A stretch of 64,000 bases of DNA, taken from contig NW_026782001.1 in assembly GCF_031769215.1 (NCBI RefSeq), positions 868,001 through 932,000 of the forward strand, in the 5' to 3' direction. A program made the translations under genes and the position numbers. The notes beneath the pieces were generated by a model. The model was not told where the DNA came from and did not search any database. It saw only the letters and a list, made by a program, of their open reading frames with translations. The DNA comes from Ylistrum balloti (taxonomy: Eukaryota). Below, piece by piece: positions 30 to 34,500 of this stretch; position 1 is the first letter of the stretch; every line of letters starts with the position of its first letter.

Positions 30-1169
30 ATGAACCATAGTCCATTGCAAGTAAGCAACAACACACTAACATTACATGAAATAGAATGGCAGGATTTTGT
101 GAAGAAGGACATACCACTGACTGTGTTTCTGTCCAGTCTGAGTGTCATTGGCACTCTGGGAAATGTTATGGTCATTTTGACCGTAGGCCGACGTGACAGA
201 TGGCGAAACTATAGAATACTCATTCAATGTCTAGCCTTTGTTGACTTGCTGAGCTGTTTTTTCAGTATTCCTGGTTACATAGCACTGTCTCGTTTCCGGT
301 ACTCCATCGAATCGGATGTGTTTTGTCGAGGTACGACAATGTTTCATATATTTGTTGGAGCTTTTTCAGTAGACTTGTTGTGTTTTATAGCAATAGAAAG
401 ATTCCGGAAAACATGCAGGCCATTGAAAGAGGACTTCAGTTTAATGCGAGTAAAGTTAGTTTGTATCTGTTTGGCAGGATTTAACATAGCATTGGCTACA
501 CTGGGACTTTTTACCTTCAGTTCCCAACGTATCATGGTGGGTAATCTTATTGGTCACAGCTGTTTGATAAACAAAGAAGGAACATTTGCTAAAATATTCA
601 GCCAGATAATAATCCTGTTTCTCTTCCTTAAAATAATTGTGTGTACAGTATTGTATTGTATAATAGGAAGGACCCTTTTACAACACAGAAAACACCGACC
701 TCACATGGTGCCGTTTAGATATCAAAATTCAACAATTAAGAACATGTCATGTGATCACAATCAGGATCAGTCAATGGAAAGAAACAACGCATGTAGTGTA
801 CGAAGAATGTCCTTAAAAAGTGTGACAAGCTCCGATCTGAATTCTTCCTTTCAAAATCATGGATCGACGAGACATATAAGTTCGAATTTGAGCGGGAAAA
901 CCCTGTACACAAAAAGCGCTAAGATTTCCTTCATGTTTCTCATGTGTACTTGCTTGTCATTTTTATCTTTCGTACCCGTTTTGGTGATAAGATGTATCGA
1001 GAGCTTTGATTGGCAGCTGAGAGCGGATATGTTTAAATATCTTGGTTCAATGGCGGGAGTTCTTTACCGATTCCATGTCCTGAACCACGTGATTAATCCG
1101 ATAGTATATTGCTTGACCAACAGCAATTTTAGACGAGACTGTACTGACTTATGTAAATACCGGAGGTAA
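30..1169 (+). CDS. Intronless class A (rhodopsin-like) GPCR, probable peptide-receptor-like orphan, 379 aa
   Basis: Seven hydrophobic segments with class A motifs: TM1 GTLGNVMV, TM2 LAFVDLL, C3.25 (VFC), TM3 AIERFRKTCRPL (DRY-equivalent), ECL2 Cys, TM5 Y..I, TM6 FLSFVP, TM7 NHVINPIVY (NPxxY), helix 8 FRRD. Single ATG-to-TAA ORF. Confidence 0.93.
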   Translation: MNHSPLQVSNNTLTLHEIEWQDFVKKDIPLTVFLSSLSVIGTLGNVMVILTVGRRDRWRNYRILIQCLAFVDLLSCFFSIPGYIALSRFRYSIESDVFCRGTTMFHIFVGAFSVDLLCFIAIERFRKTCRPLKEDFSLMRVKLVCICLAGFNIALATLGLFTFSSQRIMVGNLIGHSCLINKEGTFAKIFSQIIILFLFLKIIVCTVLYCIIGRTLLQHRKHRPHMVPFRYQNSTIKNMSCDHNQDQSMERNNACSVRRMSLKSVTSSDLNSSFQNHGSTRHISSNLSGKTLYTKSAKISFMFLMCTCLSFLSFVPVLVIRCIESFDWQLRADMFKYLGSMAGVLYRFHVLNHVINPIVYCLTNSNFRRDCTDLCKYRR

Positions 1170-7728: not shown

Positions 7729-10700
7729 AAGTCAAGGACCCAACTACAGAAAAAAGGATAATGACCCGAGGGAAGGGGCAGAGATTGTTGTACGACTAAT
7801 TTGTACACTAAACGGCAGGTAATTGGGGATAAGTTAGGGACTTAACTACAGAAAAAAGGATGATGACCTGAGGGAAGGGGCAGAGATTGTTGTACGACAG
7901 ATAATTGGGGATAAGTCAGGGACTCAACTACAGAAAAACGGATAATGACCCGAGGGAAGGGACAGAGATTGTTATACGACAGATAATTGGGGATAAGTCA
8001 GGGACTCAACTACAGAAAAAAGGATAATGACCTGAGGGAAGGGGCAGAGATTGTTGTACGACAGATAATTGGGGATAAGTCAGGGACTCAACTACAGAAA
8101 AAAGGATAATGACCTGAGGGAAGGGGCAGAGATTGTTGTACGACAGATAATTGGGGATAAGTCAGGGACCCAACTACAGAAAAAAGGAAAATGACCCGAG
8201 GGAAGGGGCAGAGATTGTTGTACGACATGTAATTGGAGATAAGTCAGGGACTCAACTACAGAAAAAAGGATAATGACCCGAGGGAAGGGGCAGAGATTGT
8301 TGTACGACAGATAATTGGGGATAAGTCAGGGACCCAACTACAGAAAAAAAGGATAATGACCTGAGGGAAGGGGCAGAGATTGTTGTACGACAGATAATTG
8401 GGGATAAGTCAGGGACTCAACTACAGAAAAAAGGATAATGACCTGAGGGAAGGGGCAGAGATTGTTGTACGACAGATAATTGGGGATAAGTCTTTGACTC
8501 AACTACAGAAAAAAAAAAGGATAATGACCTGAGGGAAGGGGCAGAGATTGTACACCCAATTTGTACACTAAACGACAGGTAATTGGGGATAAGTCAGGGA
8601 CTCAACTACAGAAAAAAGGATAATGACCCGAGGGAAGGGGCAGAGATTGTTGTACGACAGATAATTGGGGATAAGTCTTTGACTCAACTACAGAAAAAAA
8701 GGATAATGACCCGAGGGAAGGGGCAGAGATTGTTGTACACCCAATTTGTACACTAAACGACAGGTAATTGGGGATAAGTCAGGGACTCAACTACAGAAAA
8801 AAGGATAATGACCCGAGGGAAGGGGCAGAGATTGTTGTACGACAGATAATTGGGGATAAGTCTTTGACTCAACTACAGAAAAAAAAAGGATAATGACCCG
8901 AGGGAAGGGGCAGAGATTGTTGTACACCCAATTTGTACACTAAACGACAGGTAATTGGGGATAAGTCAGGGACTCAACTACAGAAAAAAGGATAATGACC
9001 CGAGGGAAGGGGCAGAGATTGTTGTACGACAGATAATTGGGGATAAGTCTTTGACTCAACTACAGAAAAAAAGGATAATGACCCGAGGGAAGGGGCAGAG
9101 ATTGTTGTACACCCAATTTGTACACTAAACGACAGGTAATTGGGGATAAGTCAGGGACTCAACTACAGAAAAAAGGATAATGACCCGAGGGAAGGGGCAG
9201 AGATTGTTGTACGACAGATAATTGGGGATAAGTCTTTGACTCAACTACAGAAAAAAAAAGGATAATGACCCGAGGGAAGGGGCAGAGATTGTTGTACACC
9301 CAATTTGTACACTAAACGACAGGTAATTGGGGATAAGTCAGGGACTCAACTACAGAAAAAAGGATAATGACCCGAGGGAAGGGGCAGAGATTGTTGTACG
9401 ACAGATAATTGGGGATAAGTCTTTGACTCAACTACAGAAAAAAAAAGGATAATGACCCGAGGGAAGGGGCAGAGATTGTTGTACACCCAATTTGTACACT
9501 AAACGACAGGTAATTGGGGATAAGTCAGGGACTCAACTACAGAAAAAAGGATAATGACCCGAGGGAAGGGGCAGAGATTGTTGTACGACAGATAATTGGG
9601 GATAAGTCTTTGACTCAACTACAGAAAAAAAGGATAATGACCCGAGGGAAGGGGCAGAGATTGTTGTACACCCAATTTGTACACTAAACGACAGGTAATT
9701 GGGGATAAGTCAGGGACTCAACTACAGAAAAAAGGATAATGACCCGAGGGCAGGGGCAGAGATTTTTGTACGACATTTAATTGGGGATAAGTCAGGGACT
9801 CAACTACAGAAAAAAGGATAATGACCCGAGGGAAGGGGCAGAGATTGTTGTACGACAGATAATTGGGGATAAGTCTTTGACTCAACTACAGAAAAAAAAA
9901 GGATAATGACCCGAGGGAAGGGGCAGAGATTGTTGTACACCCAATTTGTACACTAAACGACAGGTAATTGGGGATAAGTCAGGGACTCAACTACAGAAAA
10001 AAGGATAATGACCCGAGGGAAGGGGCAGAGATTGTTGTACGACAGATAATTGGGGATAAGTCTTTGACTCAACTACAGAAAAAAAGGATAATGACCCGAG
10101 GGAAGGGGCAGAGATTGTTGTACACCCAATTTGTACACTAAACGACAGGTAATTGGGGATAAGTCAGGGACTCAACTACAGAAAAAAGGATAATGACCCG
10201 AGGGAAGGGGCAGAGATTGTTGTACGACAGATAATTGGGGATAAGTCTTTGACTCAACTACAGAAAAAAAAAGGATAATGACCCGAGGGAAGGGGCAGAG
10301 ATTGTTGTACACCCAATTTGTACACTAAACGACAGGTAATTGGGGATAAGTCAGGGACTCAACTACAGAAAAAAGGATAATGACCCGAGGGAAGGGGCAG
10401 AGATTGTTGTACGACAGATAATTGGGGATAAGTCTTTGACTCAACTACAGAAAAAAAGGATAATGACCCGAGGGAAGGGGCAGAGATTGTTGTACACCCA
10501 ATTTGTACACTAAACGACAGGTAATTGGGGACAAGTCAGGGACTCAACTACAGAAAAAAGGATAATGACCCGAGGGAAGGGGCAGAGATTGTTGTACGAC
10601 AGATAATTGGGGATAAGTCAGGGACCCAACTACAGAAAAAAGGATAATGACCTGAGGGAAGGGGCAGAGATTGCTGTAAGATAATTGGGGGACTCAACTA

Positions 10701-11804
10701 CAGAAAAAAGGATAATGACCCGAGGGAAGGGGCAGAGATTGTTGTACGACATGTAATTGGAGATAAGTCAGGGACTCAACTACAGAAAAAAGGATAATGA
10801 CCCGAGGGAAGGGGCAGAGATTGTTATACGACAGGTAATTGGGGATAGGTCTTTGACTCAACTACAGAAAAAAAGGATAATGACCCGAGGGAAGGGGCAG
10901 AGATTGTTATACGACAGATAATTGGGGATAAGTCTTTGACTCAACTACAGAATAAATGATACTGACCCGAGGGAAGGGGCAGAGATTGTAGTACGCCTAA
11001 TTTGTACACTAAACGGCAGGTAATTGGGGATAAGTTAGGGACTTAACTACAGAAAAAAGGATGATGACCTGAGGGAAGGGGCAGAGATTGTTGCACGACA
11101 GGTAATTGGGGATAGGTCAGGGACTCAACCACAGAAAAAAAAAACAGGATAATGACCCCAGGGAAGGGGCAGAGATTGTTGTACGACATGTAATTGGAGA
11201 TAAGTCAGGGACTCAACTACAGAAAAAATGATAACGACCTGTGGGAAGGGGCAGAGATTGTTGTACGACATGTAATTGGAGATAAGTCTGGGACTCAACT
11301 ACAGAAAAAAAACAGGATAATGACCCGAGGGAAGGGGCAGAGATTGTTGTACGACATGTAATTGGAGATAAGTCAGGGACTCAACTACAGAAAAAATGAT
11401 AACGACCTGTGGGAAGGGGCAGAGATTGTTGTACGACTGGTAATTGGGGATAAGTCAGGGACTCAACCACAGAAAAAAAAGGATAATGACCCGAGGGAAG
11501 GGGTAGAGATTATTGTACGACAGGTAATTGGGGATAGGTCTTTGACTCAACTACAGAAAAAAAGGATAATGACCCGAGGGAAGGGGCAGAGATTGTTATA
11601 CGACAGGTAATTGGGGATAGGTCTTTGACTCAACTACAGAAAAAAAGGATAATGACCCGAGGGAAGGGGCAGAGATTGTTGTACGACAGGTAATTGGGGA
11701 TAGGTCTTTGACTCAACTACAGAAAAAAAGGATAATGACCTGAAGAAAGGGGTAGAGATTATTGTACACCAAATTTTTACACTAAATGACATGTAATTGG
11801 GGAT
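7729..11804. repeat. 82-bp minisatellite (~45 units) with a central 185/187-bp dimeric higher-order repeat
   Basis: Monomer GGGACTCAACTACAGAAAAAAGGATAATGACCCGAGGGAAGGGGCAGAGATTGTTGTACGACAGATAATTGGGGATAAGTCA; alternates with a ~103-105-bp variant carrying ACCCAATTTGTACACTAAACGACAGG over 8597-10539. Confidence 0.97.
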
Positions 11805-13204: not shown

Positions 13205-14304
13205 TGTGCATAGTTTTGAATAAAGGGTTGTGAAGTCAATGAATCCAGTAGAAAGAATGCAGGTCCGTAATAATGTTTTCATTTGTGACAGATGCACGCA
13301 TATGCAAATTATGAACACTTGTCTGGTTAAGAAATTTGGCGTTTTGGAACTTAGGTCTATATGTAGTGGCTTTCGTTTGTATTTTTTACACTCCTCAGCG
13401 GTCTTACACGCAATCATAATCCAGTTCTAGTGTAGTTTGGAACCAGAACGATGATGTTTTTGTTCGGGTATAATGCTTAAAGAATATTTTTGAAAACATA
13501 ATGCTTTAACGGTTGGAAGATTATCTTACACAAAACGAAATACATAGTGTGTGTACATGTCTTCGCCACGTCGTTAATAAAATTTAAAACTATTATATGC
13601 TTTTACAAAACGAAAGAGCTAATTATTTGGATTTTTTGCCATCGAATCTGACACAGTCGTTTTTTGTGCTGTGACGGTTAAAGACTGAGCGAATTTCAAT
13701 ACCAACGAAGATGCCTTATGCAAATTACATATGTCATTCTATGATCATGAGGTCATGGATTCACGTGCGCAACTCACATGCAAATTAGGACAAAGCCCGG
13801 ATGCTGATGAAAATGGCTGTTCGGAGCGGATACAATTTATTATGGAAAGCTATCTAGTAATTGAAATGGTATTGGTAAGGTTCGTGATGTTGGATAATCG
13901 CGATCATCATATCAATTTCATTTCCTCGAATTACTTTCAGGATGTATAATTGTATTAATTGTTATCAAGTTCATGAATTATTAAGCATGACAGCACGCAG
14001 AGTCATAGTGCATAATCTTGTAATATCGCACTTCTGATTCGATACCTTATGATCCAGATTAACTCGCATATTGGTCGCCAATCTATTACTTTTACAGCTG
14101 AAGGATTTCTTTTCGTTAACTTACACATAACTTTACAAATTTACCATCTTTTTCACCATCCAGAAATGTTTGAAATGATCCTCATGCTTAAATATAAGTG
14201 ATCTTTGGGCGAGAATAGGCTGGTGACCAGTAGCGAGTATAACACTGAGGAAAACATGTCCGTGACTTATGATAACTAATTTACACAAATTTTCACAAAA
14301 GAAT

Positions 14305-14310
14305 TTTATT
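14305..14310 (-). promoter_or_regulatory. Candidate distal poly(A) signal of the fj-like gene
   Basis: AATAAA on the minus strand followed by U/GU-rich TTTTGTGAAAATTTGTGT; coincides with the step in CpG density. Other AATAAA copies exist nearer the stop codon, so the end is inferred. Confidence 0.4.
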
Positions 14311-16683
14311 CTTCAATATTTTTTTAAAATCTCAACAATTTCATTCAACATATACAAATAATTTATATGACATAAAACATTACTGTAGTAAAATTGTTAA
14401 AACAAAAATGTTACAGTAGACAAATGCAGGTTGTTTTTTTAGATTTATAGATTTATACTGTATGTATGTGAAATGGTTTAGTTAGGTAATTCATTAAATC
14501 TTTCTCTGAAGTCTTTATTTTAAAAAACGAAACTTTTTAATGTGCTATTATTGAAAACAAAAATAAATTTGAAAAATAATCATCAGTTTGTTACATTGGA
14601 CAAATATGATATTTTGAAAAAAAAATTATTACACTTTTCATAGTCACACTCTTGATCTGGGCAGGGATGTGTATGATGAATTCTGTTATATGTCCCAGAT
14701 CTAGTCTATCTTCTTCAAAGAAGAAAACAAACTAGTACTTTTCAATTAAGATAAAATTGATAAAAATGTATCATGAATGTTCCTGTGATATTTAGATATA
14801 AACCAAATACTTGTCCTGTATATAGATAAATAGTACCTATGTACAATGGATTTCACTAATCTTCATTGTCTCAGGTTTCAGTATTTTGCGGCATGGTACA
14901 TTTTCAGATGTGAACACAATTATTTCTTTTTTGTCCTTTACTACACTGAATGGGAAGTTCAGAAAATTAAAATGAGAAATAAGTGAATATCACAATAGAT
15001 TCTGTTTGGATTTCTTTCAGTAAGAATTTTTCTAATGAAAAATATGTCACATGGTGAAAATGACCTATACATTACGTAATTGATATCATAATGATTTGGA
15101 TTTCTTATATTCTGATTAATGTCATCTTTAAAATGGTTGGGTTGAAGTGATCACGTAATACAATATCAAACAAGCTGGATTTCTTCATATTATGAACGTG
15201 TTCAATAGTTACAAATAAAACTGTCAAATAAATTGTGCTGAAAATATTGACAAGACCAGTTGAAAAGTTTTCTTCAACATTCATTTATATCTTTTCCTGT
15301 AGAATTTTCAGTTAGATAATTTGAATGCGGATAAGAAGCTTTAAAATTTTTGAATTCCTCATTTTTGAATCAGCTGAGCGAATGAAAAGTAATATTTGCA
15401 CTTAGTGCAGTGAATTTTAAACACCAAACCAGTTGTTAAAAAGAAGTATTCACTGAAATGCACAGAATGGCCCCAAGAAAACAGTTCTGTATTTTTTATT
15501 AACATTAGACACACTATGTTTACAGCAAATGATTATGAACAACTATTTGCTGCATGACATCTCCAACAATTAGAAATAAAGTGTTTGACTATGTTGGTGT
15601 AAAGAACATATATGAAGCTTTTTAAAGAGTAACACTTATCTTAAAGATGCTTTTTGAAATTCTAGTTTGGAACTGAAAGCACATTCCTTGTGAAAATATA
15701 TGATTTGACTAGCACAGTACAAAGACATATCTACACTATTAGCTGAGTTATCTCCCTTGTTCCTCAATAACTTCCAATTATCATCAATTACAGAAGAGTT
15801 TCCTCCACTTGATTGAGAGTTTTTGTGTTATGTTATATTCTTTAAAATCTTTTTCTGGAACTTGATGAATGTATTTATACTATTTTGCTATAGATTCAAT
15901 AAAAACCTCTAATAATAAGCATTAGCTAACAGGTCAAATGTGGTATATTTCTTAGGTTTATGGATTTCTTACATTTTACAATATCATCCCACATTAATGG
16001 TGCCCATTTGTGATTTATTCTATTCAGGGGTCATTGTCTTGTTTAAAGGAAATTGTTCAAACCTAATTTTGATAGAATTTCTTGTTTTGGGGTTTTGAAT
16101 CTTCAGATTGTTCTCCAATTTAGGTAGATAACTTGGATGTTTTCCAAAGAGCATCTTCATACTTTAGGGCATATAGCTAACAAAGTCAAGACAAAAAAAA
16201 AATCATCTCAAGTGCAGATTTTGTAGTAATCATAATAAGCAACAAGTATGTGTTAAAACTTGGTTCACACAAAATAGAATCTATTGGCATCAATTTTCTT
16301 TACTGAAAGCCTTTTAAAGTTTATTTTCGTTGCAATGCAGTATAGAACATAATTAATTGATAGTTTGAAAAAAAATATCACAGTTTCAATAATGCAACCA
16401 GGACCAGTTGTACAAAGCATCAACAGCTTTACACTTTTTTTTAAAAAGATTGAGTTACCTTATCATATCAGAACTAAAGATGGTATGTCGATAAGGATGA
16501 CATTGAATTTATGAAGATGAGACGTTATTTTCAACATTTTACATAAAAAAAGTTGGAACACCAATTTCAATTCATGTAGTCAAGGGTGTAATTTAAGACT
16601 CCGGTGTATTGAGCTATCACTTCAGCATAAAATTTGATTTACAAAGTTTTTTTCATGTATGTATTGGGAATATTAATACAAGT

Positions 16684-16875
16684 TAAACAACAATAACAGG
16701 TTTCGAGTATGTTTCTTCAATTTTATCAGATTCTCGTCGGCTTGTTTCATCCTTCTTGGGATTCATTAAGACCAGGTTCTGATGACGAGGTCCTGATGAA
16801 GCATGGGAAGAGCAAAACATGTTGATGAGTATCAAATAGAATTGAAGAAATATACTTGGAACCTGTGGTTGTTTA
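16684..16875. other. Long imperfect inverted repeat (77-bp gap-free stem, 15-nt loop) in the inferred fj 3' UTR
   Basis: 16697-16773 pairs with 16865-16789 without indels: 55 Watson-Crick, 12 G-T, 5 A-C and 5 other mismatches. An outer 8-bp helix pairs 16684-16691 with 16868-16875. Confidence 0.9.
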
Positions 16876-17147
16876 CCTTCTTTTGATCTACACTACGACA
16901 CAAACACCTTGCGTATCTTCAGGTATGCAGTCGGAGAGTAATGGATCCGCCCAATTACAAGTCACGGTGTTGGCTTTACCTCTTGTATCTTATCAGGTGT
17001 ATTGTTTTAAATCTGAAGACATATCGTGTAAGTACTTTTGATAGTATAATATGTTCTCCATTGTATGTATCCTTTCTGTGTAATGCCAGCAATTCTTGGT
17101 ACAATTGATTCTGGTTGAATAGAACTTTAATAATTAGTAACGAGTTG

Positions 17148-17589
17148 TCATCTCAGCTCATTACTCACATTAGAATTACAAGTTTTAACCCAATCAGACA
17201 CTTCCGATACTCTCTCTTTAAATCTCGTCTGGAAAAGTTTGAAAATGGAATCTTTTGGAAACACATCAAGTAAAGGTTCATGTTTTCTAGCGAACTCCAG
17301 AAGTACTTGCTCTGGTTGTAGCATCATATTTAGTCTGACTAGTGATTCCACAATTGTCCTTGGAAATATACAAAAAGTCTGCAGCATGTCACGATGGAAT
17401 TTGAGAAATTTTTCACCACCATAACCGTTGCCATTGTGATACATCAGATCATAGGCATCTAGAAGACCACTTTCATTGTCTATCAACCAAAGTTTGGAAG
17501 TTTTTATAGATTTTCTTAGGTTACGTATATTCTCTGATATAATGCTTGGCTTCTTTTCCTTGTAAGCTGCATCTTGCATGCTGGCAACC
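17148..17589 (-). CDS. fj: fj-like terminal coding exon 5 (DNE metal-binding motif)
   Basis: Acceptor tttttttatttcctacag|G at 17590. Encodes RVASMQDAAY...LWLIDNESGLLDAYDLMY...NELR, with stop TGA at 17150-17148. Confidence 0.92.
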
Positions 17590-20500
17590 CTGTAGGAAAT
17601 AAAAAAAACATATTGATGTTCCTAGTGCATATCAATGTTACATAAAATCAAAATAAATCATGTAGGAAATTTAGAGTATTGAAACCTTTTTCACTAAACA
17701 TTGATAATAAAAAATCATTTTATGACATTGACCAAGAAAAAGGGATACAGTCCATAGGGACCATTTCATTAAAGGTTTAATTTAAATCAGATTAAATGAC
17801 ACCAGAGTATCTTTATCACATGTATATTGGCAATCAATTGAGCTTATTGCTATACTGTAGTGAAGCAAAGGGAAGTAACTCTTGGGAGATCAGAACATAG
17901 TCTTGACTTCTTTTTTTATTTTTGGATAATTTTTCATGATCTTATACTGTAGGTAATGTACTAGTATACAGACATTACACAACCTTTATACACACCTGTC
18001 ATAGTTGCCAGTGAGGTAGTCAAACAAGATCATGCCTCCCCACTGGAATAGTTGGGACAGTTGAGTTGTGGTGAGGTTGGAATTCTTTATTGATGCCTGG
18101 TTTATCACAGATTTCTGCTCATATTTTTCCAGAATAAACTGAGGTATTTTGACTAGAGAGCTGCAAAATAATATAAATTATGTTACCACATGTTCTAAGC
18201 ATCCAATTATTTTTTCCTAGAAATCCAAGTTTTCCGGTTCGAGGTAATGTCAATGTGTCTTCTAATTTGTAATATTGAAATGATCATATGATGATGACAT
18301 CGTTGTACAACTTGTGATGTCAAATAATGTCAGAACTATTTGAATTTTCCATTTGATTGTGCACATTTGACTTTCTATCGCACTTAAACTGATTATGGTA
18401 ATTTGATTGGGGGTGGATTTCTTTGACAGGCATCTTTTGTCCACAATAATTTAATTGTAAGATGTAGGTGTATTTGATAACTTTTTGAAGGTTTTGAGTA
18501 AGTTTGACATGTAAAATGTCTTGTACTCCTGAACAGAAGTCTTAAAATCTTGATCAAGTCAACGTTTAATAAATGTGATTACAAGCTTCTAATGGAAGAA
18601 GGAAAATACCTGTCTGTTTTAGGCTTCAAAGATTGATTTATGAATGATTAATTTTTTCTGGCAACAAACTATTATGCTAATGAACATTATGTATCACTGT
18701 GTAGTTCGGAACTTTATTATGAGTTGTAATTTACCGTGAGCTTTCCATGTTAGGTATCCATTGGATAAGAGCGACAACCTTGCCGTCTTTCCAGTCGACC
18801 TTGCTGTAGTTGGTGGTGAGCCATCTAGGAGAGGTCTGGTTTGTGATGGACAGGACAACTGCAGGCACGCTATCCAGTCCCAGGAGTCGAGAAAGGTAGA
18901 ATGACAGCACCTCACCTGTGTAGCAATAAAAGTTAATCAGATAAGTGAGTTCCTTGTTATTTGCTTGGTACTGTTTTCAAGATCTTCTGTCAATTGAAGT
19001 TTTATTGTTCATCAGTTAATGAATTTCTTTCTTGAATATCTACAAGCAACATTCTTTTAATTTCTGCATATGTTTTCCATCAAAGACAATATTGCAAAAA
19101 TAAACTTTGTTTTTAGGGAGGTTACTTTACAGCACATGATGTTCCAATGGTAAACAATACTGCCATTTCAGATGGAAAGCCCAGCCTTATCTGCATGGTG
19201 TAATATTTTGATGTATATGAAGAAAGTAATTTTGTTGTATGGGTTACTTTTCACTATGTTAAGAAAAAAAATTCTGTGATGTAAATTTCATGTTCACTGT
19301 TGCATTTTAATTCTTACCAAGCACCATTTTGTTGTGAGGCTCTCGGTACCTGGCACACATGTGCCTCCCATCCTCCAGGGTAACAAAGCTGTTCTTAGGG
19401 CGCCCACATTTGTCCCAGGCCGGAGGGTCAAGGTACTGTACTCTCTGATCCCGCACTGACGATATATAGTCTAGTGTCTCTTGGAATGTGTGACCTGTTA
19501 ACAAAAAATTCTTATGTACAAACACCGTCTTTCATACTGATTAGATGTGTGGTTTGGGATATTCCATACACTGTGCAAAGGGAAGTTGTTGTAATGATAA
19601 GAAAATGTAAACAAATTGAAACAGTATTTTTTTGATATGATGCAGCGAAACCCACTTGATATCATGTTCCACCTGTCAGGGGGAAATGTGGTATTAAGCA
19701 GAATGTGACATTAACTGTTGACATATTTTTGTGGATGTCTAAACCCGGATGTTAATTTTCAGATGTGCCAAACTGACTTGTCTCTAAAGAAATTGTTTGA
19801 AGACAATAAATTTGTAATTTGATTTATTTTTCCCACAAGAAAACTGATTTTTTAAAAACTTTTATTTGTTTATTCTTTAAAATATCAAAACTGCTATCAT
19901 AAAGTATCGTGAGCAACATTCTGATATTATGACCAATTGGGTTTCCAATCTTTATTTCATATGATATGTTTTTCACCCTGACGAATCATGCTAGAAAAAT
20001 GAGCAAAGCCCAGTGAAGCTTTGTGGGGCAGGTGTGATAATTTTCTATGATAAATTATGCTTAATCCAGGCTTCATTACATGAACCTGAAGTTCAAATCA
20101 GTTATTTTAGCATATTAAGCTTTGTATCAGAAATGTGTTCTCGTAAATTTAGAAATGACGACATTTACAATGACGACATTGACATGCCGTGGTTTTGTGT
20201 CTAATGGGCCATTGTAAAAAGAAATAAAACAACACAATTTATCAAAACCTACGGTTCATGGTTGATTATTTTCAGAAATGTCTCTTGCAAAATAATCTTT
20301 TTTATTTTGAAATTGATCCTGGTATGCATACTAAAGACTTATTTTCGAGAAGTTTTGGAGGACTTAGCGGCATGGAGGGTATGAGGTGTTAGACATACAT
20401 TGGTTGATCACAAAATAAGAGACTTGTTGATTTTGCAGTTATTAAAAAAAAAATATAAGCATTTTGATTATTTTTTTAATCGTGTAGTCAGTTTTACCTA

Positions 20501-29500: not shown

Positions 29501-31525
29501 AGAGAATAATTTGTTTCTGTTTCAAGAATGCTGGTTCAGTTAAAACGAGAATGAAAATAAAAAAGAGGACGAAAGTTTCAATTCATTTTACTTAATATTC
29601 TTTGATTAAATTGGGCATTTATTGATATATTCAATATTCAATATATGGATATATTCAGACATTAAGAGTCTAACAGGCACCTAAATATTTGCCATTAATA
29701 CTCCGTAATTTGAGAAAAATCAGCTCAATGACATTGTAAGCGGTTGTTATATAACACTATTATGACATCACAGTCGAATGTGTTTTTGTTATTTTCCTTC
29801 ATGGTAGAATAATCAGGCAAAATTGATTGTATTCAGAGTTTGGAGAAAAACCTACAAAAAATTCATCATTCCTATATGTAATTTGATTCTGAAATCTTTA
29901 ATACGATAAGTGCAATAAGATCGGGCACAGACAAAAAACTGGTTGTAAATCTAGAGATCTTAATTCATCAATTGTTTATGATGTTGTTCAGCTGAGTATG
30001 TACCTGTATGTACAGTTGGTATACAGGTAGTCAGGTCTGATGAACTGTTAAGTACACCATATATTGATTTTGTATTTATGTTTCTTAATTTTTTTTGTGA
30101 TTGTTATATCAAAAGCGAAATGAAACAAAAGTTCAACATTCTGATTATAACATTAATGTGTTTAAAAAATACTGTTATTTGATAATTGATTTATAGCCGA
30201 AAGACGTTAGATTGTGAGGTTGAGATTTTCTTTTAACAAGAAAAAAAATAGATAAAATTATACAAATGAAAAATAAAAAACAGAGCAATTTCATTAGGAT
30301 AATGAGATACAGGAGGAAGTTAGAAGTCTTCTATAAATGAATTTAGATTCAGCGATATCTTAAAAATGGCAGCAAACTTTTACTTGATATCAGACTGATC
30401 TGTTCCTATTCATTTCTCAGAACTTTGAGGCAGATTAAATGGCAGTGCACATGTTTGAAACTTTATCATGCCAATTTTTTTATGACAGAGATTGAGTTCT
30501 GTACCAAGACCTCTTCAATCACCGAATGTTTGAGACATGGCAGGATATCTCATGCAATATTCATTGGAAAATTTAACTTTTTGGGATCGAGACAAAAATC
30601 ACTTAAGTGCTATCCCTGGTGTAATTGTTACAAAACCAAAATTGTAAGGGGATCCACAACCATCTCTCATCTGTCATAGCTCTGACAGGATTTCTTTATT
30701 GATTTCTGATTGTAAATCCAATGATAACTTACCTTTTGGAACTAGATTCTCCACAGTCGGAGACCAGTATATTCCATCCTCGATAATGTCTGTTATTGTC
30801 AGCTCATGTTGTACGCTGTCCTTTGAATTACCTTGACGTTTAAGTACAAGGCTGTTTTTATCTGGTACTACCTTATAATGTAAAGGCGGTTTGATAAATC
30901 CACTGAATTTGCCTTTGGATTTACGAAGTTGACTCTTAACTTTGAATTCATTTGTTTCTACTTTTTCATCTTTTAATCCATCATCATAATCATCATCCTC
31001 ATCTTCTTCTTCCTCCGTTTCCTCTATCACAACCTTTTCAATGTCCTCTTCATAATCATATTCTTCACTTTCGTCCCTTCCATTGGTAACATGATCTGTA
31101 TTTTTGCGGTTAGGAAAATGCTTTACTTCAACTTTCATTTCCACATCATTTGTTCTCAGAAAATTAGATCTCCTTTCCGTCAATTTCACAGTTTCCTTTA
31201 AGTTCACATTTTGATAATTTCCATTGAGTTGTAAACCTCGAGGCCTGCTATTACTGACCATTATTTGGCCACTATCTGAATCACTATGAAATTTCTCAAT
31301 TGCGGCTTTTGGTTGACGCTGACTTCTTGCAATGATATGATTTCCGCCTAATTCTATATCTGAATCCATCAGAAGCTCTGAATGGACAACATTTTCAATG
31401 TTATCAACACTATCAGATCGCTGTAGTTGGTTGACCATGATATTTAATGTCAAAACAAAACTTAACAGGAAAAATGTCATTGTAAGTAATAACGTCTTGC
31501 GTTTATGCACTCGTGAAAAATACAT
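17148..31525 (-). CDS. fj: Four-jointed-like Golgi secretory-pathway kinase, joined model of 5 coding exons (1758 nt, 585 aa)
   Basis: Exons of 793+177+181+165+442 nt join in frame through canonical GT-AG sites with matching phases (1,1,2,2). The product has a type II signal anchor plus Fj-family motifs: GIYWS, CGR..N...LEDG..MCARYR, GEVLSFYLSRLLG..VP, QWIP, QW..MILFDYLTGNYDR, LWLIDNESGL. Confidence 0.9.
17996..18160 (-). CDS. fj: fj-like coding exon 4 (catalytic-loop region)
   Basis: Acceptor attttgcag|C at 18161, donor ACAG|GTGTGT at 17995. Encodes RSLVKIPQFILEKYEQKSVINQASIKNSNLTTTQLSQLFQWGGMILFDYLTGNYD. Not present in the ORF track. Confidence 0.9.
18735..18915 (-). CDS. fj: fj-like coding exon 3
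   Basis: Acceptor ttgctacacag|GT at 18916, donor CACG|GTAAAT at 18734. Encodes GEVLSFYLSRLLGLDSVPAVVLSITNQTSPRWLTTNYSKVDWKDGKVVALIQWIPNMESS; this is a different frame from the 18694..18915 track ORF. Confidence 0.9.
19318..19494 (-). CDS. fj: fj-like coding exon 2
   Basis: Acceptor tttgttaacag|GT at 19495, donor CTTG|GTAAGA at 19317. Encodes GHTFQETLDYISSVRDQRVQYLDPPAWDKCGRPKNSFVTLEDGRHMCARYREPHNKMVL. Confidence 0.9.
22500..23276 (+). mobile_element. Non-autonomous Helitron/Helentron-type element with internal satellite-like repeats, in fj intron 1
   Basis: 5' GAGACCTAGGGGCCTAAATGGTCACCTGAG and 3' AAAAGGTCGCCATGAG...CAGGTGATCAAAAA form subterminal inverted repeats plus a 3' hairpin; inserted in an A/T context. 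Internal degenerate repeats with CATGAAATTTACAATTT / CATATAATTTACAAGTTT resemble the oyster Cg170/HindIII satellite as I recall it. Confidence 0.65.
24078..24690. repeat. 46-bp minisatellite, ~8 good plus several decayed copies
   Basis: Unit CAGTATTAAGATACATTGTTTTGTAGACATGTCTTACTTTACTGTT at 24078, 24124, 24170, 24216 and onward. Confidence 0.9.
26121..26420. repeat. 30-bp monomers organised as a 90-bp trimer, ~3 copies
   Basis: Monomers CTGTTATGGTAACCATGATTTAAGTATAGA / CTGTTACGGTTACCTTGATTTAGATATAAA / CTCTTGCACTAACCTTAATTTAGGTAAGTA repeat in order. Confidence 0.9.
26457..26820. repeat. 31-bp minisatellite, ~12 copies
   Basis: Unit AGTGTACAGGTAATAGTGTTAGGATGTTTCT. Confidence 0.95.
30733..31525 (-). 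CDS. fj: fj-like coding exon 1: cytosolic tail, signal anchor, acidic stem and start of kinase region
   Basis: ATG at 31525 with A at -3; hydrophobic LLLTMTFFLLSFVLTLNIMV after the basic HKRK; ends IEDGIYWSPTVENLVPKG at donor AAAG|GTAAGT (30732-30727), phase 1. Confidence 0.85.
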
Positions 31526-34500
31526 TGTTTTTTCTTTTTGTAAACTGATTATAGGATTAAGTCATTTCTTTTTTTCGCACAGAAAATGTCATTTTGCTAC
31601 TGCTATAAATCTATACACACTGGTATGATAAATCTCACAGTTGTTGCACATGTCGTTTCCATGGCTTCCAAACAAGAATTCAAATGAGACCTGCATGCCA
31701 TCAGTATTTTATTTCCATGCATCCTTCACAAATGGAATTGACATTTAGTGTGCGGAATCGCTTTTGATTTTGACATCGGCTGCTGAGTTGGATTTCAGTA
31801 TCAACACCAGATGTAGAATGTATTTCCAATCCACACATTAAAAATCCCAAGTTCTCTTTTAATGTTTTCCGTATATATACCATACAGATTCCAAGTTTTC
31901 TTGATAATCTATTCCATGCTTGGCAAGCAATCATAGGATTTTCTTGAGAGTAGGATATGAGAAACAGATAAACACAGTAGCTGTAACTTGTAACACAACC
32001 TTCTGAGCTACGCAGTGTATTCTATAGATTTACCTGCTGGCTGAGGAAAAAAATCATTGGAGTTGACACGTCACACAGAAACACCTGTGTCTTTACACTG
32101 GCAAGCTAGTCCTGTACTGTGGCTGCTAGGGAATCTGATTCTTGGAGAGCTATTGGATTTCCTTGCCTTTATTCCCCTGTGCTCTCCCTGAGCTCAGTGT
32201 TCACTTGAGTAGCATGTTCAGATTACGGTCTGTTGCCACTCTCGGGAGTTTCCATGAAAAATTCTCCGATAATTTTCTGTGTTGGTTTGCTGGCACTTCC
32301 TTCTGAATGAGTGAGCGCCTTGATAGAGAAGTGTAGACATCAAACATGTAAAAATAAATCTCCACTATAATTAGGTTCTCACTGCTTTTGAATTACACAG
32401 GAGGTTTGTTGACAATGGAAGCCGGCTGTACCAGGGACATTCAACAGTAAGACTCTCTCCTGCAGGTTTTTGTTGACACAGGTTCTGTATAGTATATAGA
32501 ATCAGCCTTCAATGAGTGGTGTTGACTTAGGTTCCAGTTCTGGTCTCCTCAAGACTGGTATATACTTTATTGACTCAGAGCCTGTGTAGTGCTGTACTAC
32601 GTGGACAGTGAATTGAGAGCGCCTGCTGCAAATGTTTACCCTCCCGTGTGACGCAGTCCTTGATCCCCCCACCCTCATTCACACCGTCACACACAGCCAC
32701 TAACAACAGTCAATAGAATTCGACAGCTCGAAGAGGCGAATAAATTAACATTGTCACCGCTGACGCGACAGAGGTGACAGCCCTCTGTGGTCCTGAAATG
32801 ACAACAACTTAACACAATAAAGCCTCAGGAATGGACAAGTCACTTGTCCCGTGGGGTGGGGGTATTTGTTGTTGATGTCCCAAGTAAGTGATAAGTTCGG
32901 GTTTCCTTTTACACTTAATTCTGTCTCCTAGGATCAGGTGGAGTACATATCCCCTGGGGTAGGGCTGGTACAAAGCCTGTAGTCTTGGAAATGATGTTAA
33001 ATCTCCTATTACACTTCCCTTTCACTGGGAGTCTGACGAGAGGTCATTCAACAACTGCTGCTGTTGTTCGTGGGTTCACAACCTGTGTGAGAAAACAAGA
33101 AGGGAATTATATTTAACAAAAAAGTATCATACACTTTTACAGAAATAACTGAAAGTTTAATATTTGGATAATATAATCATACTCTTATCATCATAAAAAC
33201 AAACCTGTTTAGTGTCTCAATGTTAAAGAACAACAAAACAACACATATTTTCAGGTTTTACAAAAATGGGTATGAAAATTGTTTTGTGTTTGAATAAATA
33301 ACAAATCCAGTTTTGATTGGTGTTGGTTTTTGTGAAGAAGCCATGGATTTCAACCCTATGATGAGAGAAGTATGAATGAAAATTCTCTTGAACTAAACTG
33401 CATGTTTTTATCGTTTAGATGGGGGATGAGAAACTATGAACTACTATCAATATTCCATTTTCCTTTTGTTCAGCAACATATTGGTTGTAAATGAATTAGA
33501 CAATGGTGTCGTTGCACCCTGGATGTATTTAGTGATAAAAGAGGAAAGTTTGGCTTCAACATAGACTATTTATATAACAAAATTGCTATTAAGTTCAAAG
33601 AGAGATATGTCAGATATTTTTGTTCATTAAAATATTTACCCGGAGGAAGTTGCAAATATGTTTCATTGGATAAGGTAATATTGAGTAGAGGAAAAATCAA
33701 TTCTTTTAATAGGTTGTGTGAGTTATAATTCAATATTCTCAATGAAGTTCTACATGGAGTGTAGCACTTATTAGATTAAACAGAGTATGTGTGTAACTTG
33801 TAATAAATCAGGTTATCATTTAATGGATGATATGTAGGAAGCAGACGGCAACATCTACAACATATATTATTGTTGCTACAGTGATCACATACTGAATTAA
33901 AATCTAATTTACAGCAGAACATTTAGGACTTAGAGGTATTAGTATGAAGTGTTTCACCAAGCCTGTTCTGATAACATTCACCAACTCCAGAATTCTCCCC
34001 AGGCGAAGATGTCTCCGGGGGAAATACACGTTATAGTGAGAGAGGAGACGAAATGGTGATCCTATCGTCCTGCTACTTATTTAACTTTCAAATACGGCAA
34101 CACATTAGATATACAATATCAGGAATTTAAATATGAATAGGATTACTGTACTGAACCTTTATCTTCACTATTATAATAGCTAATCATTGAAGATGGCATG
34201 CTTGCCGGTAGACATTTTAAGTGAAATCTTACATATTCTCATATCACATTTTGAAATTCTGTTTGTCATAGAAAACCTTGCCTTTGATCGAACCCGCTCC
34301 CTTTTGATATGAATTCAACTAGTTCCAATATTTGATGCAGACTATTCCATGTTACGATATAGGTGTGACATGTTATCAATTTGATTGCATGCCAAAAGAC
34401 AATCTTGCATGCTGTGTTGGACGCCTGGTCTCGGGTCTGCTAACCAATATGAGGATAGGATGATTTCTGTATTGGTTTTTGTGTTCCGTAATTGGATTGG

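Follow-up and report, generated by a model that had tools for sequence, protein, structure and literature searches.

Why should one 8-nt word occur five times, always in the same orientation, in the 3′ untranslated region (UTR) of a kinase gene of the scallop Ylistrum balloti? The gene, a four-jointed-like gene, lies on the minus strand of the 64,000-nt stretch analysed here (contig NW_026782001.1, positions 868,001 to 932,000; hereafter the window). An earlier interpretation based on the letters alone (the sequence-only reading) had taken the word for an 8mer target site of the microRNA (miRNA) miR-1986. Having compared the locus with its counterparts in other scallops and beyond, we consider it probable, judging from sequence, that the gene is a functional multi-site target of miR-1986 that was acquired and has been maintained in scallops.

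On the plus strand the word reads TGGATTTC and in mRNA sense GAAAUCCA. All five copies were found where the sequence-only reading had placed them (Table 1), four of the five fitting in 337 nt, and no copy in the reverse orientation occurs in 14285-17147. Every site contains GAAAUCC, the reverse complement of GGAUUUC (miR-1986 nucleotides 2-8), and an A stands opposite miRNA nucleotide 1 in 5/5 Ylistrum sites and in 10/10 sites of the other scallops. Dinucleotide-preserving shuffles of the 2,863-nt stretch give an expectation of 0.09-0.10 copies, which upholds the rarity that had been proposed but is about twice the proposed value (~0.05 per strand), and the maximum in any of 2,000 shuffles was 2 copies. 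Across the whole window there are 11 matches of the 8-mer against 3.57 expected, a number reached by 0/100 shuffles. In DNA assemblies X1, X6 and X7 (~1.1% diverged) the five sites are unchanged among the differences listed, but as only 0.4 changes would be expected this is uninformative.

Could such a cluster arise by chance, from base composition, or as the remnant of a repeat or transposon? The stretch is AT-rich (29% GC), and some non-low-complexity 8-mer reaches at least 5 copies in 3.7% of its shuffles; repetition alone is therefore modestly significant, and the weight of the case is the match to a known seed together with the recurrence in other scallops. A repeat origin might also be suspected if the word formed triplets in other parts of the genome; similar genome-wide clustering was what the sequence-only reading had said would refute it. 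Such triplets (60-90 nt gaps) do exist, 620 among the matches listed, but all are in tandem repeats or satellites and they are not commoner than those of the reversed control word (880), so that the scan is uninformative on clustering outside repeats. The specific word is, however, expected 0.1 times in the stretch, as given above, and the region is neither repeated nor tandem: no tandem repeat overlaps the five sites, the flanks of the copies are mutually unrelated, and 14800-16000 matches only itself in the 648-Mb genome, in line with what had been read from the letters.

To follow the sites beyond Ylistrum, orthologous loci were compared with 10-kb flanks, and sense 8mers were counted downstream of the stop codon (Table 1). 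The four scallop UTRs together hold 15 sites against 0.29 expected, no antisense 8mer is present in any of them, and all their 7mer matches are full 8mers. The word, written as DNA in mRNA sense GAAATCCA, is the sole non-homopolymer 8-mer that each of the four UTRs contains at least twice. Of the 840 words with its composition, which total 0.23 copies on average, it ranks first. In none of 1,000 shuffle sets was there an 8-mer containing two or more G/C letters that reached 2 copies in every one of the four UTRs. The 8mer has thus been selectively retained in four scallop genera. Independent clusters in three other genera weigh heavily against a chance, compositional or repeat origin, which the four-species comparison effectively refutes and to which we attach almost no probability.

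The scallop UTRs align at 45-55% identity. Ylistrum, Pecten and Mizuhopecten share only ten identical ungapped blocks of at least 8 nt. The sites at 15176-15183 and 15095-15106 are two of them, on a background of 1.3% conserved 8-mer windows. The global UTR alignment is unstable, a tail-anchored second alignment having misplaced both sites aligned by the first, for which reason the alignment-free counts carry most of the weight here. The other sites sit at differing positions from one genus to the next, a pattern suggestive of turnover while selection continued. Outside scallops, no 8mer was found past the stop codon in the orthologues of Mytilus, Crassostrea virginica, Mercenaria, Octopus, Liolophura and Lingula. 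Conservation in orthologous bivalve UTRs, proposed earlier as a check, therefore holds for Pecten, Argopecten and Mizuhopecten but not for mussel, oyster and clam; within this set of taxa, only scallops carry the site cluster.

Ylistrum itself encodes the cognate miRNA. The miR-1986 22-mer has a single exact occurrence in the 648-Mb assembly (C144:794539-794560, minus strand), and the control gave no hits. In its precursor, a hairpin of -40.1 kcal/mol (z -5.4), the 22-mer makes up the 3′ arm. This hairpin matches the Rfam mir-1986 model (RF03753) over its full length with 45.5 bits (E 8e-7). The 5′ end predicted for miR-1986-3p is UGGAUUUC, the seed is GGAUUUC and GAAAUCCA is the corresponding 8mer site. 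The mature sequence and seed given in the sequence-only reading were thus correct, and the published bgl-miR-1986-3p and hru-miR-1986 match the Ylistrum mature sequence 22/22 (PMC7328434). A mir-1990 hairpin (68.3 against a gathering score of 63) lies ~540 nt from mir-1986 on the same strand (G000:C144:794539-795210; locus L001 1501-2171, minus), and the two probably form one polycistronic cluster. The mir-1986 locus shares contig and strand with the four-jointed-like gene and lies ~88 kb beyond its 3′ end. The family had been thought mollusc-specific, but PMC12257675 cites MIR-1986 at the level of Lophotrochozoa. In the gonad of an oyster, miR-1986 and miR-1990 are reported to be male-biased (cited in PMC8945268). 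In the literature library searched, no target of the miR-1986 family is described and no paper joins miR-1986 with four-jointed, in agreement with the view that the link was undescribed.

Next to be settled is whether the sites are part of the mRNA. The gene occupies 31525-14285 in five coding exons. Contigs of run X2 carry the joints 17588/17995, 18160/18735 and 18913/19316, whose CT..AC ends are GT-AG on the minus strand, and because of these spliced joints we take the run to be transcript-derived. The contig of exon 2 continues into exon 1, its loose end at 19496 matching the window from 30735 onward. Spliced to the upstream exons, the X2 contigs cover 14371-16705 and 16981-17525. The block AAGAATAAAATTCTT around a poly(A) signal is identical in Ylistrum, Pecten and Mizuhopecten, with a very similar block in Argopecten, and therefore the 3′ end is placed near 14285. 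Given this end and the contigs down to 14371, the five sites lie in the transcribed 3′ UTR in mRNA sense, as the sequence-only reading had supposed. They are 540-1,660 nt ahead of the poly(A) signal, four of them 540-870 nt. The UTR also contains an 85-nt inverted repeat (16689-16873; 72% complementary, 15-nt loop) ~270 nt past the stop codon. The repeat, which may be a foldback element, lies in a stretch inserted in Ylistrum with respect to the other scallops.

Table 1. Features of the four-jointed-like gene in the window, and sense 8mers downstream of the stop codon in orthologues
Feature	Position	Strand	Remarks
Coding part of exon 1	30733..31525	-	ATG 31523-31525; N-terminal hydrophobic anchor, acidic stretch, DGIYWSP
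Coding exon 2	19316..19498	-	joint 18913/19316; upper boundary uncertain by 2 nt
Coding exon 3	18735..18913	-	spliced joints
Coding exon 4	17995..18160	-	spliced joints; holds FDYLTGNYDR
Last coding exon	17148..17588	-	stop TGA 17148-17150; LIDNESG and C-terminal kinase part; joint 17588/17995
3′ UTR of four-jointed-like gene	14285..17147	-	~2.86 kb; contigs reach 14371, end placed by the conserved poly(A) signal
miR-1986-3p 8mer site 1	15961..15968	-	1,183 nt past stop; inside transcriptome contig 15554-16223
miR-1986-3p 8mer site 2	15176..15183	-	position kept in Pecten and Mizuhopecten
miR-1986-3p 8mer site 3	15097..15104	-	position kept in Pecten and Mizuhopecten, block AAGAAATCCAAA (15095-15106)
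miR-1986-3p 8mer site 4	15007..15014	-	context AAAGAAAUCCAAA; transcribed
miR-1986-3p 8mer site 5	14847..14854	-	2,297 nt past stop, ~544 nt ahead of poly(A) signal; in transcriptome contig 14371-15574; lineage-specific in scallop UTR alignment
AATAAA poly(A) signal	14305..14310	-	within conserved block AAGAATAAAATTCTT (14299-14313)
Ylistrum sense 8mers	1183, 1968, 2047, 2137, 2297 nt past stop		5 in UTR
Pecten sense 8mers	1691, 1761, 1817, 2271 nt past stop		4 in UTR
Argopecten sense 8mers	1152, 1271, 1457, 1686 nt past stop		4 in UTR
Mizuhopecten sense 8mers	2024, 2119 nt past stop		2 in UTR
Haliotis (abalone) sense 8mer	870 nt past stop		1; UTR end there not mapped

What, then, would read the word? 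The predicted duplexes with miR-1986 range from -9.5 to -15 kcal/mol and pair by the seed only, by which 3′ supplementary pairing and target-directed miRNA degradation are ruled out. Local AU content at the 15 scallop sites is 65-82%, and an A faces miRNA nucleotide 9 in 12/15 of them and nucleotide 10 likewise in 12/15. Adenosine and AU flanks are known to mark effective miRNA sites. The same adenosines could, in another account, belong to the motif of a sequence-specific RNA-binding protein governing stability, localisation or translation (consensus approximately AAGAAAUCCA), with the seed match to miR-1986 coincidental. That consensus reaches 2 nt upstream of the seed match, its A at -1 and -2 cannot pair with miR-1986 nucleotides 9-10 (C, C), and the strand specificity of all sites fits any RNA-level element. 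However, its invariant core is exactly the 8 nt of the canonical site for a deeply conserved miRNA encoded in the genome, and by our estimate about one 8-mer in every few hundred would serve a conserved miRNA as its 8mer site, which makes coincidence unlikely. Moreover, adenosine flanks are themselves a known feature of miRNA sites, and we know of no RNA-binding protein with a AAGAAAUCCA-type motif. We therefore regard a protein-binding motif as unlikely.

Further copies of the word are found upstream of the coding region. Sense copies of GAAATCCA lie at 31789-31796 and 32154-32161 (minus-strand sense), -271 and -636 from the ATG, and there is another copy of the 8-mer further upstream, at 33344. 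The -636 copy is kept in 4/4 scallops and the -271 copy in 3/4. Taken with the 3′ copies, these would suit a transcription-factor site (TGGATTTC/GAAATCCA) acting at the DNA level, in the promoter region as well as in an enhancer located downstream. Yet the upstream kilobase that holds both copies is 76-86% identical among the four scallops, and because the surrounding sequence is uniformly conserved, their retention is uninformative. A conserved CAG/GTAAAT between the -636 and -271 copies resembles a splice donor, and the kilobase may include a 5′ UTR exon, to which the upstream copies would possibly belong. The orientation is 15:0 in mRNA sense in the four UTRs, whereas transcription-factor sites usually tolerate both, and the 3′ copies are in transcribed, otherwise unconserved sequence. 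The 8-mer resembles only part of a Rel/NF-kB site, being without the terminal CC. A DNA-level role is thus, in our view, very unlikely. Separately, the coding part of exon 1 holds an additional sense GAAATCCA ~605-611 nt from its start in both Pecten (L010 10612) and Argopecten (L011 10606), and the Ylistrum window has no copy at that place.

Which four-jointed gene carries the sites? Single-exon searches of Pfam, the ESM Atlas and PDB sequences did not identify it, and its identity comes from a HMMER representative search and the names of the sources. The last exon (145 aa) matches, with 100% identity, residues 441-585 of the NCBI entry 'extracellular serine/threonine protein kinase four-jointed-like [Ylistrum balloti]', and its identity to the orthologues is 94% in Pecten, 90% in Mizuhopecten and 89% in Argopecten. 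A direct Pfam search gave only FAM198 (26.7 bits); Pfam PF28411 (FJX1_middle) is precomputed on the scallop orthologues, among which is the Ylistrum entry just named. The motifs DGIYWS, FDYLTGNYDR and IDNESG are retained, and LIDNESG of the last exon aligns with LLDNEAG of frog FJX1. The D-N-E motif has been reported to be necessary for Fj kinase activity.

The gene had earlier been named fj, and of this name the family stands but the orthology does not. The best match of frog FJX1 in the genome is at C282:902946-903860 (E 7e-77, 39% identity, 266 bits), compared with 29% identity and 139 bits for the window's protein. This other gene is an intronless ORF of 492 codons (locus L020 5935-7413, minus), and no copy of the 8-mer occurs on either strand in the 9.9 kb of this locus that were searched. 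An unrooted maximum-likelihood tree of 31 proteins, with which a quick tree agrees, splits two four-jointed clades at 100/100 support. One (clade B) comprises frog FJX1, insect and crustacean fj, a Limulus copy and the C282 gene. The other (clade A) comprises the window's gene, all mollusc 'four-jointed box protein 1-like' proteins, Lingula, Owenia and Lineus, and also takes in second copies from chelicerates, a myriapod and crustaceans; it did not turn up in insects or vertebrates among the proteins sampled. Because arthropods and Ylistrum are present in both clades, the duplication is older than the protostome ancestor. On the tree and the match scores, we conclude that the window's gene is a four-jointed-like paralogue and not the fj/FJX1 orthologue, and that the canonical orthologue of Ylistrum is the C282 gene. 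Since the gene is a paralogue of fj, its earlier designation as a Fat/Dachsous-type Golgi kinase is an extrapolation. In oyster embryos a 'four-jointed' transcript, paralogue unspecified, is a marker of neural and ciliated cell clusters (PMC12551290).

Taken together, these data lead us to the following model. The window's gene encodes a secretory-pathway kinase of the Four-jointed family, and the five canonical 8mers in its AU-rich ~2.86-kb 3′ UTR would pair with nucleotides 2-8 of miR-1986-3p, with an A opposite nucleotide 1. Argonaute loaded with miR-1986 would bind the predicted sites cooperatively, by the ordinary action of the miRNA-induced silencing complex, and would lower mRNA stability and translation wherever miR-1986 is expressed, making the four-jointed-like gene a dedicated multi-site miR-1986 target in scallops. 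Binding, repression and any downstream effect on signalling are what we infer from the sites and the miRNA. More broadly, we lean slightly towards a scenario in which an ancient lophotrochozoan miRNA, miR-1986, gained a dedicated multi-site target in an old Four-jointed paralogue, with 2-5 8mers kept under turnover in four genera. In this scenario miR-1986 would control a secretory-pathway kinase, possibly one of planar polarity or growth, as a switch particular to the lineage.

Several observations weigh against a miR-1986 target. The two sense copies upstream of the ATG are not required by a miRNA model. The Ylistrum hairpin scores below the Rfam gathering score of 50 and hence under the family threshold. 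No run is catalogued as RNA, run X2 was recognised as transcript-derived from its spliced joints alone, and its contigs carry no strand information. These contigs also leave a hole at 16706-16980, so that we infer the continuity of the UTR; the hole coincides with the inverted repeat described above, which would be expected to break short-read assembly. Proximal AATAAA signals at 16325, 16019 and 15500 could give short isoforms that lack most of the sites. Lastly, orthologues in other molluscs that have miR-1986 are without the sites, and therefore the interaction is not ancient.

Other elements of the UTR are conserved as well. Among the few blocks conserved in all four scallops is TGAAACTGTGATATTTT (16372-16388, minus), inside which CTGTGATA (16376-16383, minus) is an 8mer site (K box) of the miR-2 family. 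The Ylistrum genome has a miR-2 cluster, in which the 23-mer is found exactly four times (contigs C412 and C494). Given this conserved 8mer and the miR-2 genes in the genome, the UTR appears to conserve seed matches more generally. Two further blocks, CTAGTCAAAT (15703-15712) and CTGCATTGCAAC (16329-16340), both minus, are conserved in three scallops, and CUAGUCA in CTAGTCAAAT is what we take to be a 7mer-A1 match to the miR-279 family seed. Between the four-jointed-like gene and the next gene lies a satellite array of ~4 kb (7812-11767) with an 82-83 bp unit and higher-order periods of 185 and 372 bp, purine-rich on the plus strand, with a GC of 0.43 and strong GC and AT skew. Convergent with the four-jointed-like gene is an intronless 379-aa ORF (30-1169, plus strand) that resembles a rhodopsin-type G protein-coupled receptor. 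Argopecten has a 7tm_1 gene in matching position and orientation (locus L011 26869-28041), and therefore the neighbourhood is syntenic.

The functions of lophotrochozoan-specific miRNAs are almost unknown, and target predictions in molluscs are mostly single weak sites. Here, support is of four kinds: the 8mers are multiple and perfect, they keep strictly to one strand, they recur in four genera although the UTRs have diverged almost to saturation, and they are missing from the paralogue and from orthologues outside scallops. The predicted regulatory gain dates to the scallop lineage and, if true, it would give a first testable function to both miR-1986 and the kinase paralogue. The miRNA itself belongs with the MIR-1986 family (Rfam RF03753; lgi-, hru- and bgl-miR-1986) in its identical mature 3p sequence, hairpin precursor and clustering with mir-1990, and is unlike it in the 45.5 bits of the Ylistrum locus against the gathering score. 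The kinase shares with Drosophila fj and vertebrate FJX1, Golgi kinases of Fat/Dachsous cadherin domains, the FJX1_middle domain, the three motifs named above and an N-terminal hydrophobic anchor. It differs in its separate clade (100/100) and in having five coding exons, where the true orthologue is intronless. There is a second clade of Four-jointed-like kinases, kept in molluscs and non-insect arthropods and labelled 'four-jointed box protein 1-like' by annotation pipelines.

As a regulatory arrangement, the scallop UTR resembles the K-box and Brd-box words of Drosophila Notch-target 3′ UTRs (sites of miR-2 and miR-4/79), strand-specific words that were likewise found by repetition and conservation and later explained as seed complements. 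The likeness extends to the conserved K-box-type word CTGTGATA in the scallop UTR. The Drosophila boxes are, however, spread over a gene family, whereas the scallop word is multiplied in one gene and its function is predicted. Also comparable are lin-4/lin-14, let-7/lin-41 or HMGA2, and bantam/hid, where one long 3′ UTR holds several conserved seed matches for one miRNA. The multi-site arrangement of targets of the lin-4/lin-14 type suggests dedicated, switch-like repression. Those pairs have been proven genetically and biochemically, whereas the scallop pair is a prediction. Its sites differ from the classical ones in being 8mers that pair by the seed alone, with no 3′ supplementary pairing. 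Its miRNA is lophotrochozoan, and the cluster is confined to scallops in the taxa compared. The predicted miRNA-target pair is in these respects one of a known kind, with unusually strong comparative support.

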